Made by a program: the position numbers and the translations under genes. Of a DNA stretch of 64,000 bases, positions 56,743 through 62,660 are shown in pieces. Origin of the DNA: Epiperipatus broadwayi (Eukaryota > Animalia > Onychophora); the NCBI GenBank assembly GCA_028023455.1, contig JAQFVV010000002.1, forward strand, positions 24,428,001 through 24,492,000. The letters run 5' to 3'. How positions within the stretch are numbered: the stretch's first letter is position 1; each line of letters begins with the position of its first letter. The notes beneath the pieces were generated by a model. That model made no database searches and had not been told where the DNA came from. It was given only the letters and a program-made list of their open reading frames with translations.

Positions 56743-57988
56743 TTGCAGGAAAATATTAAGGATAAATACATACACTTAAAAAAAAATCTCCTAAATACAT
56801 AAGGACAAAATATCTTAACAATTTACTAATATTATTCAAGGTAGCAGTTGCTTATGTACATTTTTTTTCAAGAATAATATATCAATTTTTCAAGCATACT
56901 CATCGCTGTCTCTATTTAAATTGAAAACATTTTAAATGATACAGAAGATTGTTGTTCTAAGTATTATTGCCAATTTAAAATTTAAGAATGCAAAAATTAA
57001 AGATGGCTCACTTGTAAATAATATAAAGCAATGAAAAAATTTCATTTAAGAATGTCCCATAACATTTTGAAAATATGATGCAATCATCACCATTCAAAAT
57101 GTACTAAATACTGAGATTTCCATTCCACAGAACAATGAATATACTTTTCTCATTGATTAAAATTAATTTCTCTGGCTTTTCTTAAAAGTACATATATATA
57201 CACACACACAAATAAAATGTCCTTCAATTAAAAAAACTATTGTAAGAACAATAAAAATAATAAATACAAAGATATATTAACTATTATATATAGTCTTTGA
57301 ATCGGCATAAGTATTTTTGGGAGTTAAGAAAGATTAAGGAATTAACCAAAAGTACTTCTGCATATTGAAAGACTGTATATAATAGTTAATAGCAGTTATA
57401 GGTATTATATATATGTAGGTAGCTAAAAATCACTATCCAACAACATACCTAAGAAATCTGAAATAATGAAATATTTTTTTTTTTAATTAGCAAGTAGAAA
57501 GATAAATAAAAAGATTTTGCTAGAACACTTTTGGAAAGGAAAATTAATGTTTTTTTATATTTTTGATATATTTTTTTTTAAACAGAGTAATAACTACTTA
57601 CTAAGTACTTAAGAATGATGGGTAATTGACCATAAAAAACATACATATATATATATATTAGTAATAAAATTTTATTACTAAGAAAACGTCAATCTTAATA
57701 TAAAAAAAATTGTACATAGTTATATATATATGATGATCATTTGTTTTGTGTTAGTTAAATTAACAATAACTTAAATTTAAAAAAAAACCAATAATTATAA
57801 CAGTAGAAAATAAATCAATATTTTTAAATATAAAATGAGATACAGAGCGCCACCTACGTTTCTACAAGCTGGACGCCATTCACCTCTGCTCCTCAAATAA
57901 TTTTTAAAAAAGTGTCTGAAAAATCATAATAATTTAACAGTGGAAGCCTTACTACATTAAGGTAAGTTCTTTTTAATTTTCTAGTATA

Positions 57989-59821
57989 ATGGATGTGGAG
58001 GATTCCTCCCATATCCCTAAATTAAGGGCACAATTTAAGCCCTGGGTTGAAACATCAAATAGCTTACATTATATGTCTAAAAACGCTAACGAAAATAAAA
58101 AAGCTAGACCTACTAGGAATCTATATAAATTACGTGATCAACATAATTCCCTTAGAAATAATGGTAATAATTCAGAACTCAGATCTATTATACAGTATAA
58201 TTCAAAAAACAATAAAATGAAATCAAAAAGGCACTTCGTGAATAGTAAAACTTTCACAAACGTTATTGAAGGCCTAACACAGAACATGCCAGACATAATC
58301 ATGCTGGGAAGTTCGACGGAGCAAACGTCTACCATCCACATGGTTCATAATAACTCAAACTTACAGTTAGGAGATATAGACAAGAATATCTTTCTTAATA
58401 TATCAGATAAAGTGTGCCCTACTAATATTGAAATGCAACAATTAGCTAGCTTCGATGAAGCTAACCTTACGGTAAGGCCGGGTGCAATCATAGACTACGT
58501 TTCATCCAACGATGTTGACCTTAATTCTGATCCGCTCAGCGTATTACACAATATAGACTCTAATAAATCTCCAATAGCCAAACACTCCAGAACTAGCATT
58601 AATCTTAGGAAAATGCTCATAGCTAACGAAGCAATATCATACAAAAATCTTATAAGTACTAAACCTAGTTCTGTTGCGGAAGATTCTAATATAGAACCTA
58701 GCTTGGGTGATAATTCCCAATTCATTCTGCATGATAGTTTAAAAAATCATTGTAATCATAAATCTACAGACTCATCTAAATGTCATACTGTATATAACCT
58801 TCGTAATTTAAGTTTAAGACGAAATAAATATAATATTAAAAAACGCACACAAGTGTCAAATATTAAGGACAACAATTACCTCGGTGACGATACCCCATTT
58901 TCACAGCAAGACTTGGAAGCCATAAGCAAAATTAAAATCAAAAAATCAAACAATTACAATAAAAACATTTTTATTGACATTAATGTACAAAATAATATTC
59001 AAGTAGAATCATATACAAGCAACGAAACTTCTGCAGATTGTTCTGAAATCGACTCTTCTTGCTTTCTAACTGCTACGGTTGCTGATGCTGCTACTCCCGA
59101 TAAAGATATGCTGGACGCTACATCGTTAATAAATCAGAGTTTTACAGTATAATCAGATGCAGATACAACACAGCTCGATATACTGAAGCAGGATATGGTA
59201 ATGAACAATATCAAAACATATGTAAATAAAAACTCAGAACTCCCCATAAATAACAAAAATAAAAATATGACGGTGGAAACAAATTTGGAAAAAAAATCTA
59301 TAGTCGCTACATAGAATTTCTCTAACTATAGGGACAAGCTCACTGATCATAATGGTATCAATACACACAAAAAAAATCTGGTTTCTATCACTGATAGTAA
59401 TACCACAGCCTCTGCAAAGTTCGACCCTATTCAAACAGCTTTTATCGATAAAACAGTAATGGCATCATATGACGCTAACCTGCCTATAAATCAGAATTAT
59501 ACTAACATAAAAATAGACGCAACAAAGCTGAATGCTACTAAACAAAATTCAACAGCTATTAATTCTAAATCAAACGAAGGGGAAAAATCGCAATCCTACG
59601 CTATAAACAGCAATAATAATAAATTAGCTAAAAATAGGAAGGCAAAAAAAAAATCTATACACACTACGGAGGTTTTTGCAAGCGGCGCCATATTGGATCA
59701 CCGTAAATCATGTAAAATAACCTATAAAACCAAGAAATCAAAAAAATCTAACACTATAGATAAGCTCCATCGTCGACACAATATCAAAATACAAAAAAAA
59801 AATCAACAATCTATGGGATGA
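57989..59821 (+). pseudogene. Long N/S/K/D-rich reading frame (about 610 codons) of unknown origin with two in-frame stops, antisense within the U12 intron
   Basis: ORFs 57989-59152 and 59459-59821 are in the same frame (offset 1470 nt). The intervening sequence is open except for TAA 59150-59152 and TAG 59312-59314. I recognise no domain. Confidence 0.6.
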
Positions 59822-60199
59822 ATAACACCAAACTACATACAAACTGCCCACTGAAATACCTTCAGGTGCTCTATAAAATCAAACTGTAAGAACTTTGTAT
59901 AAAGTAAAATTTAAGTATGTACATAGATCACTACTTAACTTAAAATTATACTAATATTTATATCAATAAATACTATACATTTTAAATGAAGAGAAAAAAA
60001 TATATAGCAATAATAATGATAAATATAAGCAAACGACCTGAGTAATAGTCTTTAAATATTGGCATTTAAAAATAATATCATAATTCTAATGTTTAATTTA
60101 TTAAATTGCGGTTTGATGCTTTGTTATTCCAGAGAAAGTAGAAATATTATAAAAAGCTACAGGATTTGAAATATAATTCCATTATTTTCCAAATATCCA

Positions 60200-60700
60200 A
60201 ATTATCTTTTCATTCTGCAGATATCTGATCTATATATGGTTATAAGTATGCAAATACTAATTTATATACACAATGATGCAATGTAGATATCCTTTCATTT
60301 AGCAAGTAATCAATCCATAAAACATTGCAAGTGAACAGATGCTAGTTTCACCAATGATGAGATTATAGAAATTAAATCAATTTTTATCCTGTGTATAAAT
60401 TATATATCAAGCTCACAAAATCATGTGAATATAACCATAACATTTGTATACATTTTTCTTTGTTATCATTTAGATCTCATCAATAAAAAATAGATAGTAT
60501 CCAGTTCTAGAAGAAAGGAAATTCCCGATGGTTTTGAAATGTTAGAATTAATTTTTGATTACTTTTCATTTTATAAATTGTCACTACTCACAAATCCTTG
60601 ACACATTGTATAGTGTCTGGGTGAATAATGTTGCTTTTTACCCCATCAATGTGTCCAGTTTACTGTATACTTTTAAAATAAATAAAAAGAAAATCATGTA
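60200..60700 (-). mobile_element. Possible highly decayed hAT transposase C-terminus
   Basis: The minus strand reads NERISTL...PYIDQISAE*KDNL, resembling the ERL..L...D.VID.FA hAT dimerisation tail; weak. Confidence 0.3.
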
Positions 60701-61330
60701 AAAAAATTTAGATGTGCTTCTATAACTTTTTGTCACTTATGCCATAATAACTATAACAATACCTTTTATTCACTCTTTAATCAATTCTAGTCAGCATTCC
60801 ATAAATAAAAATATTATTACACAATAATGACAAAAAAAATATTTCACAATTATTACATATAACAAACATTTATGCTTTTTAATACAAATATCATTCTTTC
60901 ATTCTAACACAAATTAAACAATCTATAATTCATTCTCACTACACTAAACTGTAAATATATTTTCATACATATTTTTTCAGTACAATACCATACAAATAAA
61001 ATAACAAATATATTTGAGACATTAGACATTTAGTTGTAGTGTTTGTAATTTATTATTGTGAATGCAGTAACAAAAATACATATAATGACAAAAGAATAAA
61101 AATTTTATCCAAACCATATGATTTATTATTCACATATCTATTTTAAAATGAATGAAGTCAATTCACAATCTTAGACAATATAATTAATAATAAACAATTT
61201 TTTATATTAATATTATCATTGTCATTGTAACACAGTTCAATGGTTCATAGGTTAAGATATCCACCATCAAAATCACACAAGAAAGCATATATATATATAT
61301 CACTAATTGTTTAACAATGATCTATAAAAT

Positions 61331-61472
61331 AATTAAATAGGCAAAACTTTCCATACAGTAGTGCCACCCTGTGCCAACTAGAGTAATCAATGGATGCCAG
61401 AAGGCACTACTATATGGAGAGTTTTGCCTGTTTAATAACAGTTATCTGCTAGCATAAGAGATGGTGATCATG
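61331..61472. mobile_element. Short ATCACATGA-family fold-back related to the 16-kb element
   Basis: AGGCAAAACTTTCCATACAGTAGTGCC versus GGCACTACTATATGGAGAGTTTTGCCT; shares CTAGAGTAATCAATGGATG with 15935; TGATCTATAAAAT direct repeat at 61318-61330 and 61473-61485. Confidence 0.75.
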
Positions 61473-61689
61473 TGATCTATAAAATTGTTAAATAATATTT
61501 AAATCTGGGAGTTGGGGGTCTTAATTAATGTATAGCTCCATTCTCATCTTTCTTTAATCAACAGTTAATGGTGTAAGTGGTATAGATTGCAACAGACATT
61601 TTGGAAGACAGAAATGAATGAAATTAATGTTTATTCTTGTAAAATATTTAATTAGTCCCAAATGTTTGTATCATGCACAGTAAAGTTTG

Positions 61690-62000
61690 AACAAACAGAA
61701 AATCCTTATAAGATTTCCAAATCATGGCAGTTTCTAATTCCTTTTGATGATCATCAGACATAAATCCATCAATGGTTGTAGAGTATACAAAGATTCAATT
61801 CATCACATGTCATGTTTGCAGTCAGTTCAACTTCTTAGAATAAACATTTGAAATGGAACTCAATTATAAATGTTTTTTTCTTGTGGTTTAGTAGTCATTG
61901 GAGTATGCAATGTCTGCTAATCTATCCAAATATTCATTAATTTTGAGACTGATGATCTTGAAACATTAAACAATTGTTGACATCAATGCCCTTATACACT
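61690..62000 (-). mobile_element. Possible PIF/Harbinger-type transposase remnant
   Basis: The minus strand reads FNVSRSSVSKLMNIWID and, in another frame, TIDG...SYK, resembling Harbinger HTH and IDG motifs; heavily degraded. Confidence 0.3.
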
Positions 62001-62660
62001 CACATAGAGATATTTTTTCTCACAAGAATATAAAATTTACCTCAATTCTATGTCATGTAATTCTTATTCCTTTTGTATGGTTTTATATATATAAAAAAAT
62101 AAATGTCATATTGGTATGCATTTCCATCTCTGAATTACAAGATGCCAAAAGCATACTGTTGTGGTATGTTGATCTATTATTTTGTCCAATTTATGAGTGT
62201 ATTTGAATATATATATATATATATATGAAATTTAAACAGAAAAATCAAAACTTCCAGGAGCTATATATAAATTAATCCTCATATATCAATAAATGCAAAG
62301 AATAGTATGCATTTATTGACAAATGTATAATTAGTTTATGTATAGCTTCCAATGGTTTTGAATATTTCTGTTCAAATTTCCTAGATATTACGATATGCAT
62401 TTTTATATTTGCTTAAATATGTGGGTATTTAACTAGTCATAAAAGATAAATCATTAAAACAAAATCTTAAACCTTCATCATGTTTTTCCTATATTATTAT
62501 TCTTTGAAGGACTACTGTAAAGAAGTTTGCCAAATATATAAATATATAGACAATTGTAATTAGTCTAAAACAAATTATGAGATTTATATAGCTGTAAATT
62601 TATTTCCCTTAAATAATTAATATATATATATACATTGTATAAATATGTATAAAAGGATAT

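Follow-up and report, generated by a model that had tools for sequence, protein, structure and literature searches.

How should one read an intron that starts with AT and ends with AA, a combination that is neither GT-AG nor AT-AC, and which splicing machinery would be expected to remove it? The question is raised by a locus of the onychophoran Epiperipatus broadwayi, located in a 64,000-nucleotide (nt) stretch of DNA that is referred to throughout as the window (NCBI GenBank assembly GCA_028023455.1, contig JAQFVV010000002.1, positions 24,428,001 to 24,492,000); all coordinates given below count from its first base. There, on the minus strand from 62660 to 56743, the gene for RPC1, the largest subunit of RNA polymerase III (Pol III), is interrupted by a phase-1 intron of 5,918 nt with AT-AA termini. 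Our answer, of which we are highly confident, is that this is a U12-type intron of the AT-AA subtype, occupying an ancient position in a single-copy gene and enlarged by retroelements. As such, it is a solid but unremarkable instance of a kind of intron already known, and a form of an old and widely shared RPC1 minor intron.

The splice signals, the contiguity of the protein, the small nuclear RNA (snRNA) genes, and the comparative pattern are established in this work; that the minor spliceosome actually removes the intron, and how efficiently it does so, is what we infer. A first-pass annotation of this DNA had called the intron U12-type with AT-AA ends and had proposed that RPC1 output depends on the minor spliceosome. 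The former is upheld by the consensus signals, the four minor snRNA genes, the contiguous protein, and the U12-type introns found at this site in other organisms, and the latter, on the same four counts, is to be expected.

Signals at the ends of the intron

The upstream exon, here exon A (62661..62756, minus strand, 96 nt), is preceded by a U2-type ..TTTAG acceptor and ends, in minus-strand reading, with TTC CAT TTT GCT GGT GTT GCT TCT ATG A, where the last base, at 62661, is the first base of a split Asn codon. The first letters of the intron, from 62660, are ATATCCTTTT (in a longer read, ATATCCTTTTATAC), and the U12-type 5' splice site /ATATCCTTT (62652..62660, minus strand) matches the consensus at intron position +1. 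Regarding the other end, the branch-site motif TCCTTAAT (56755..56762, minus strand) matches TCCTTRAY and is separated from the junction by 12 nt; ATTTTCCTGCAA is all the sequence found between the motif and 56743. The presumed branch adenosine, at 56756, and the last intron base are 13 nt apart, a distance inside the published optimum of 11-13 nt for U12-type introns (PMC3584512). The intron finishes at 56743 with TATTTATCCTTAATATTTTCCTGCAA, and the terminal AA (56743..56744, minus strand) presupposes the register that the donor consensus sets. The downstream exon, exon B (56591..56742, minus strand, 152 nt), starts from 56742 with AT ATC ACT CTC GGA GTT CCA CGC, and the predicted spliced product joins ATGA to ATATCACT. 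The exon end ATG A, the donor, the branch motif 12 nt from the end, and the AT ATC ACT restart had all been placed here by the first-pass annotation, and all are present. A correction is needed at the far border of exon B, which ends at 56591; the next intron starts with GT at 56590 (/GTAAGA donor).

Shuffled versions of this DNA would contain, per 128 kb with both strands counted, 2.46 occurrences of RTATCCTTT and 7.14 of TCCTTAAY. For donor and branch motif to lie both in register with the points where the protein homology breaks off and starts again, the joint chance is on the order of 1e-8. Chance origin of the splice signals is excluded. Concerning a polypyrimidine tract, there is just ATTTTCCTGCAA after the branch motif, a weak indicator in a window with a G+C content of 27%.

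The junction was enumerated over boundary slides and over alternative pairs within about 90 nt of both borders. No GT-AG, GC-AG, or AT-AC pair in this range restores the protein, in agreement with the earlier claim that the segment MNITLGVPR is restored only by this excision. The least damaging in-frame GT-AG pair, 62676|56727, deletes GVASMNITLG, i.e., ten conserved residues of RNA polymerase Rpb1 domain 5, and annotation restricted to GT-AG would break the gene, as had been anticipated. The first-pass annotation had also pointed to an AC at 56737-56736, which is indeed present and whose use would take out 7 more nt. From the presumed branch adenosine to this AC the distance is 20 nt, beyond the 11-13 nt optimum; since the choice of the 3' site in U12-type introns is described as error-prone in the review that gives this optimum, a minor frameshifted product by this route is possible.

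Identity of the gene and contiguity of the protein

Searches against databases were run exon by exon, with spliced joining only inside the junction enumeration. In profile searches, exon A corresponds to positions 73-101 of the Pfam family RNA_pol_Rpb1_5 (E 2.2e-15) and exon B to positions 105-150, and the profile runs continuously over their junction. Exon A aligns with residues 1032-1061 of human RPC1 and 1087-1117 of yeast RPC1 (search against solved structures), and exon B, taken without the split codon, with human residues 1063-1112 (E 4.5e-19, 41/50 identical) and yeast residues 1119-1167 (E 2.6e-15). Matches of RPB1 to exon B have E-values of 5e-6 or weaker, with RPA1 and the archaeal subunits also far below RPC1, and exon A gives the same ranking, with RPC1 above RPB1, RPA1, and archaeal Rpo1. 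By these comparisons the gene is that of RPC1, and not of RPB1, RPA1, or archaeal Rpo1. The closest matches to the exons are insect-like, and the RPC1 exons are single-copy in the 5.6-Gb assembly.

The alignment of exon A stops at human M1061 and that of exon B starts at I1063, which leaves a single residue between them, the split Asn (A|AT). A missing micro-exon, named in the first-pass annotation as a finding that would speak against its reading, is ruled out by this contiguity.

Minor-spliceosome machinery in the genome

The genome holds full-length matches, above the Rfam cut-off, for the genes of U12 (127 bits), U11 (106 bits, several copies), U6atac (122 bits), and U4atac (80 bits), and the recognition boxes are intact in all four. 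The GTAAGGA of U12 pairs with the branch site TCCTTA(A)T, the 5' end of U11, AAAAAGGG, is complementary to the CCTTTT of the donor, and the AAGGAGAG box of U6atac is complementary to the donor ATATCCTTT. In addition, the layout of the U6atac gene is of the Pol III type, with a TATA box (TATAAATA) from -31 to -24 and a run of T6 as terminator.

In the mechanism that we propose, which is that of the established minor-spliceosome pathway, U11 would bind the donor /ATATCCTTT and U12 the motif TCCTTAAT, and U6atac would take the place of U11 at the donor. What would decide the 3' site is above all its closeness to the branch site, and because of this a terminal AA could stand in for AC. Excision would then join ATG A to AT ATC, restoring the conserved segment.

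The genome further contains exons of a CCDC84/CENATAC homologue. In human cells, CCDC84/CENATAC favours AT-AN minor introns, and by analogy the homologue may have a role in AT-AN splicing here. Its N-terminal match (L100, G000:C12458:59471-59602) and its C-terminal match (L101, G000:C7712:57025-57135) are on two different contigs, which points either to a gene split by an assembly break or to two partial copies. A further side observation is that 14 U11-like loci are above the Rfam cut-off, vs one U12, one U4atac, and one strong U6atac; U11 would be either multi-copy or accompanied by leftover pseudogenes.

The same site in other organisms

The conservation of the intron was approached by an indirect test, which makes use of public open reading frame (ORF) calls on genomic contigs that run from exon into intron, and thus translate the splice signals. 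On the 5' side, after FHFAGVASM, 53 clusters continue with NIL (/ATATCCTT, A|AT ATC CTT) and 26 with SIL (/GTATCCTT, A|GT ATC CTT), a few have NIH, NIP, NIY, or NIN, and 30 are continuous; a U2-type GTRAG donor is found in none of these 5'-side fragments. On the 3' side, the last base of the intron can be read from the residue that precedes ITLGVPR; this base is G in 46 clusters (residue D), C in 18 (H), and A in 3 (N after unrelated sequence: P0015, P0152, and P0162). The branch site also leaves its mark on the translations, with L[ND] at offset -6 in 15/55 fragments and [SPTF]L[TI] at offset -7 in 12/54, the other offsets having 0-3 occurrences. As judged from the motif, these signatures are the two open frames of TCCTTRAY, 10-11 nt from the junction; its third frame is a stop, consistent with the many fragments that have only 3-5 upstream residues. 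For the A-ended P0162 and the NIL donor fragment P0290 alike, the longest contig given has 16,888 nt, and they are probably on one contig. Moreover, related fragments with the intron-end translation [IVF]LDS[LW][LS] finish in N, D, or H, and therefore the last intron base varies among relatives.

Metagenome contigs scanned at the nucleotide level for introns at the same codon and phase gave both U12-type and U2-type cases. U12-type introns, with AT-AC and GT-AG versions among them, are found in L026 (591 nt, donor ATATCCTC, 3' end AC), in L021 (donor outside the contig, TCCTTAAC followed by 13 nt ending in AC), in L039 (551 nt, donor GTATCCTTG, TTCTTAAT followed by 8 nt ending in AG), and in L049/L050 (233 nt, donor GTATCCTTT, TTCCTTGAC followed by 11 nt ending in AG). 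U2-type introns are found in L081 (111 nt, donor GTACGC, 3' end CACAG) and L093 (77 nt, donor GTAACC, 3' end AACAG). Protist or fungal contigs mostly lack an intron here, and the stick-insect genomic ORF P0155 reads straight through it. From the coexistence of U12, U2, and intronless forms it follows that the position is old and usually U12-type, and that the intron was lost or converted in some lineages. The comparison of the intron position with other species, to which the first-pass annotation had looked for support, is thereby supplied by the 79 NIL/SIL clusters together with the U12-type cases L021, L026, L039, and L049/L050.

As a separate observation, insect-like RPC1 fragments that are 89% identical to exon B (L023, L029, L030, L031, P0187, P0188, and P0194) match it only from residue 7 (RIKEI..), which suggests that in these organisms an intron would be located a few codons downstream, and not at the studied site.

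Other readings of the intron ends

Some points weigh against the AT-AA assignment. The terminal dinucleotides hinge on picking one of seven equivalent registers, and both the junction and base 56743 are taken from the assembly sequence alone. The three other A-ended cases are known from translated fragments, which report the last base only and not the penultimate one. Lastly, non-canonical termini are reported to be spliced less efficiently in some tests.

The least unlikely alternative is that of an ordinary AT-AC U12-type intron, in which the A at 56743 stems from a mistake in the assembly or from a minor allele. Such introns are about 20 times commoner than AT-AA ones among the conserved minor introns of animals, at this very site elsewhere a C end was found in 18 clusters vs 3 with an A end, and the base is represented by one copy in the assembly, with no second haplotype copy. 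However, a particular base substitution at a particular position of a finished assembly occurs much less often than the roughly 1% at which AT-AA is found in nature, and the flank of 56743 is not a homopolymer. The three other clusters with A-ended versions argue in the same direction, one of them apparently sharing its 16,888-nt contig with an ATATCCT donor fragment. We therefore regard an error or allele at this base as very unlikely.

We consider it extremely unlikely that the same messenger RNA (mRNA) is produced in another register, for instance AT-AT at shift +2, or by the major spliceosome acting at non-canonical sites. The boundary can be slid over seven positions with an identical mRNA, and complementary DNA cannot separate them: AA-CA (shift -1), AT-AA (shift 0), TA-AA (shift +1), AT-AT (shift +2), TC-TA (shift +3), CC-AT (shift +4), and CT-TC (shift +5). 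None of the seven has GT-AG or AT-AC termini, as the first-pass annotation had maintained, and AT-AT is, for its part, also a known minor subtype. Against a different register stands the pairing with U11 and U6atac, which needs ATATCCTTT at intron position +1; only shift 0 provides it, the donor at shift +2 being ATCCTTTTA. Against the major spliceosome stand the absence of a U2-type donor, the apparent lack of a polypyrimidine tract with AG, and a branch motif at the U12-typical distance.

To the idea of a decaying or unexpressed RPC1 copy, whose odd termini would be without consequence, we give hardly any credence, because, in spite of very long introns (up to 38 kb) packed with transposon remains, this is the sole RPC1-like copy of these exons in the assembly, and its five visible exons are all open and conserved, with four canonical borders among them. 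RPC1 is an essential protein. The U12-type AT-AA intron is accordingly the reading that we retain in what follows.

Repeats and further features of the locus

Two repeats make up about 57% of the intron. The first is a fragment of a young family of long interspersed elements (LINEs) at 57842..59806 on the plus strand, i.e., antisense to RPC1, which comprises the ORF1 region and has 391+53+168 codons open, two stops aside. The family counts at least 10 copies at 95-99% identity, and a longer copy (L102:2671-10000, minus strand) carries an ORF2 for endonuclease and reverse transcriptase, preceded by about 1,400 open codons for which no Pfam match was found; the copy in the RPC1 intron covers only the 5' part of this upstream region. 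The second is an older dispersed repeat at 59909..61284, with dozens of copies at 75-81% identity. We propose that these two retroelement-derived insertions expanded an ancient, often U12-type intron to 5.9 kb. A nested gene was considered and rejected: the long antisense open frame at 57977-59818 is due to the multi-copy LINE fragment and has no Pfam match of its own. No Rfam family or transfer RNA (tRNA) was found within the intron.

Downstream, three more RPC1 exons were located on the minus strand by tblastn with a full-length relative, all with AG and GT flanks: exon C (50414..50500), exon D (50122..50304, LEVNAHTICLSIISSKLRVKP..NIVIK), and, after a 38-kb intron, exon E (11983..12091). 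The borders of the other four visible RPC1 introns, apart from the one at 62660-56743, are all GT...AG. No C-terminal RPC1 exon was found below 11983 in the window, which makes the next intron longer than 12 kb.

Transposon remains are found in other introns of the gene as well. The intron next to the one studied has hAT-type transposase remains at 52643-54419 on the minus strand (Dimer_Tnp_hAT, E 1.1e-5, with a 217-codon open frame before the domain), and the 38-kb intron between exons D and E (12092-50121, minus strand) has many transposon-like open frames, among which is an ORF at 29416-29901 (plus strand) that resembles the tail of a reverse transcriptase. An endonuclease-like ORF is located beyond exon E, at 9126-9452 (minus strand). 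The window has two tRNA-like matches, 5874-5951 and 35902-35981, both on the minus strand; one is a tRNA-Gly(TCC) by ARAGORN, and the other, found by Rfam only (35.8 bits), may derive from a short interspersed element. Finally, a long (GA)n/(CT)n microsatellite at 8227-8398 gives LSLSLS in translation, and RERERE from the opposite strand.

Implications

The main value of this finding is for annotation, as a gene finder restricted to GT-AG, GC-AG, and AT-AC introns cannot model this essential gene correctly. It also provides a naturally occurring AT-AA intron at a position that ends in AC or AG in relatives, and the last base is seen to vary at one orthologous site. Published work already regards the final position of A-type minor introns as loosely constrained, and this observation agrees with it. 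In this lineage, the catalytic subunit of Pol III would join the genes that depend on the minor spliceosome, and the current understanding of these introns is left unchanged.

A more speculative idea starts from the Pol III-type layout of the U6atac gene. If Pol III makes U6atac, and if U6atac is needed to splice the RPC1 mRNA, then RPC1 and U6atac would depend on each other, the RPC1 minor intron would be half of a conserved mutual dependence, and the drift of its last base among A, C, and G could tune the coupling. The variation cited for this idea is that of the ILDSLL-N, -D, and -H fragments. We consider the idea unlikely to be right.

Comparison with known systems

AT-AA minor introns are on record in human (3), mouse (4), and Arabidopsis (1). 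Among the conserved minor introns of animals they account for 1.117%, vs 21.8% for AT-AC, and the AT-AN class is handled as one functional group. The first-pass annotation had presented AT-AA as a rare variant, and it was correct in that the subtype is documented and infrequent; it is no oddity, however, since no other non-canonical minor subtype is as common in animals and plants. Our literature search found no report of a minor intron in POLR3A or RPC1, and POLR3A is not among the entries listed in the human minor-intron lists of the PMC8280824 supplements, hence the RPC1 intron seems not to be of the minor type in human.

Compared with the known AT-AA subtype of U12-type introns, the intron described here has the same donor, /ATATCCTTT, the same branch motif, TCCTTAAT, a short distance from branch to 3' site, no GT-AG, and a host gene devoted to information processing. 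There is no difference in kind, and what the literature search did not return is the present combination of host gene and organism. With the orthologous RPC1 introns of other organisms it shares the codon, the phase, the ATATCC or GTATCC type of donor, and a TCCTTRAY motif 10-13 nt from the 3' end. Those introns mostly end in AC or AG, whereas the Epiperipatus copy ends in AA, and they measure 77-591 nt in the contigs read, vs 5.9 kb here, a size due to the retroelement insertions. The nearest functional parallel is offered by human POLR3C and POLR3H, which have GT-AG U12-type introns in the same human lists: there, too, the mRNA of a Pol III subunit relies on the minor spliceosome, although the subunit is a different one.

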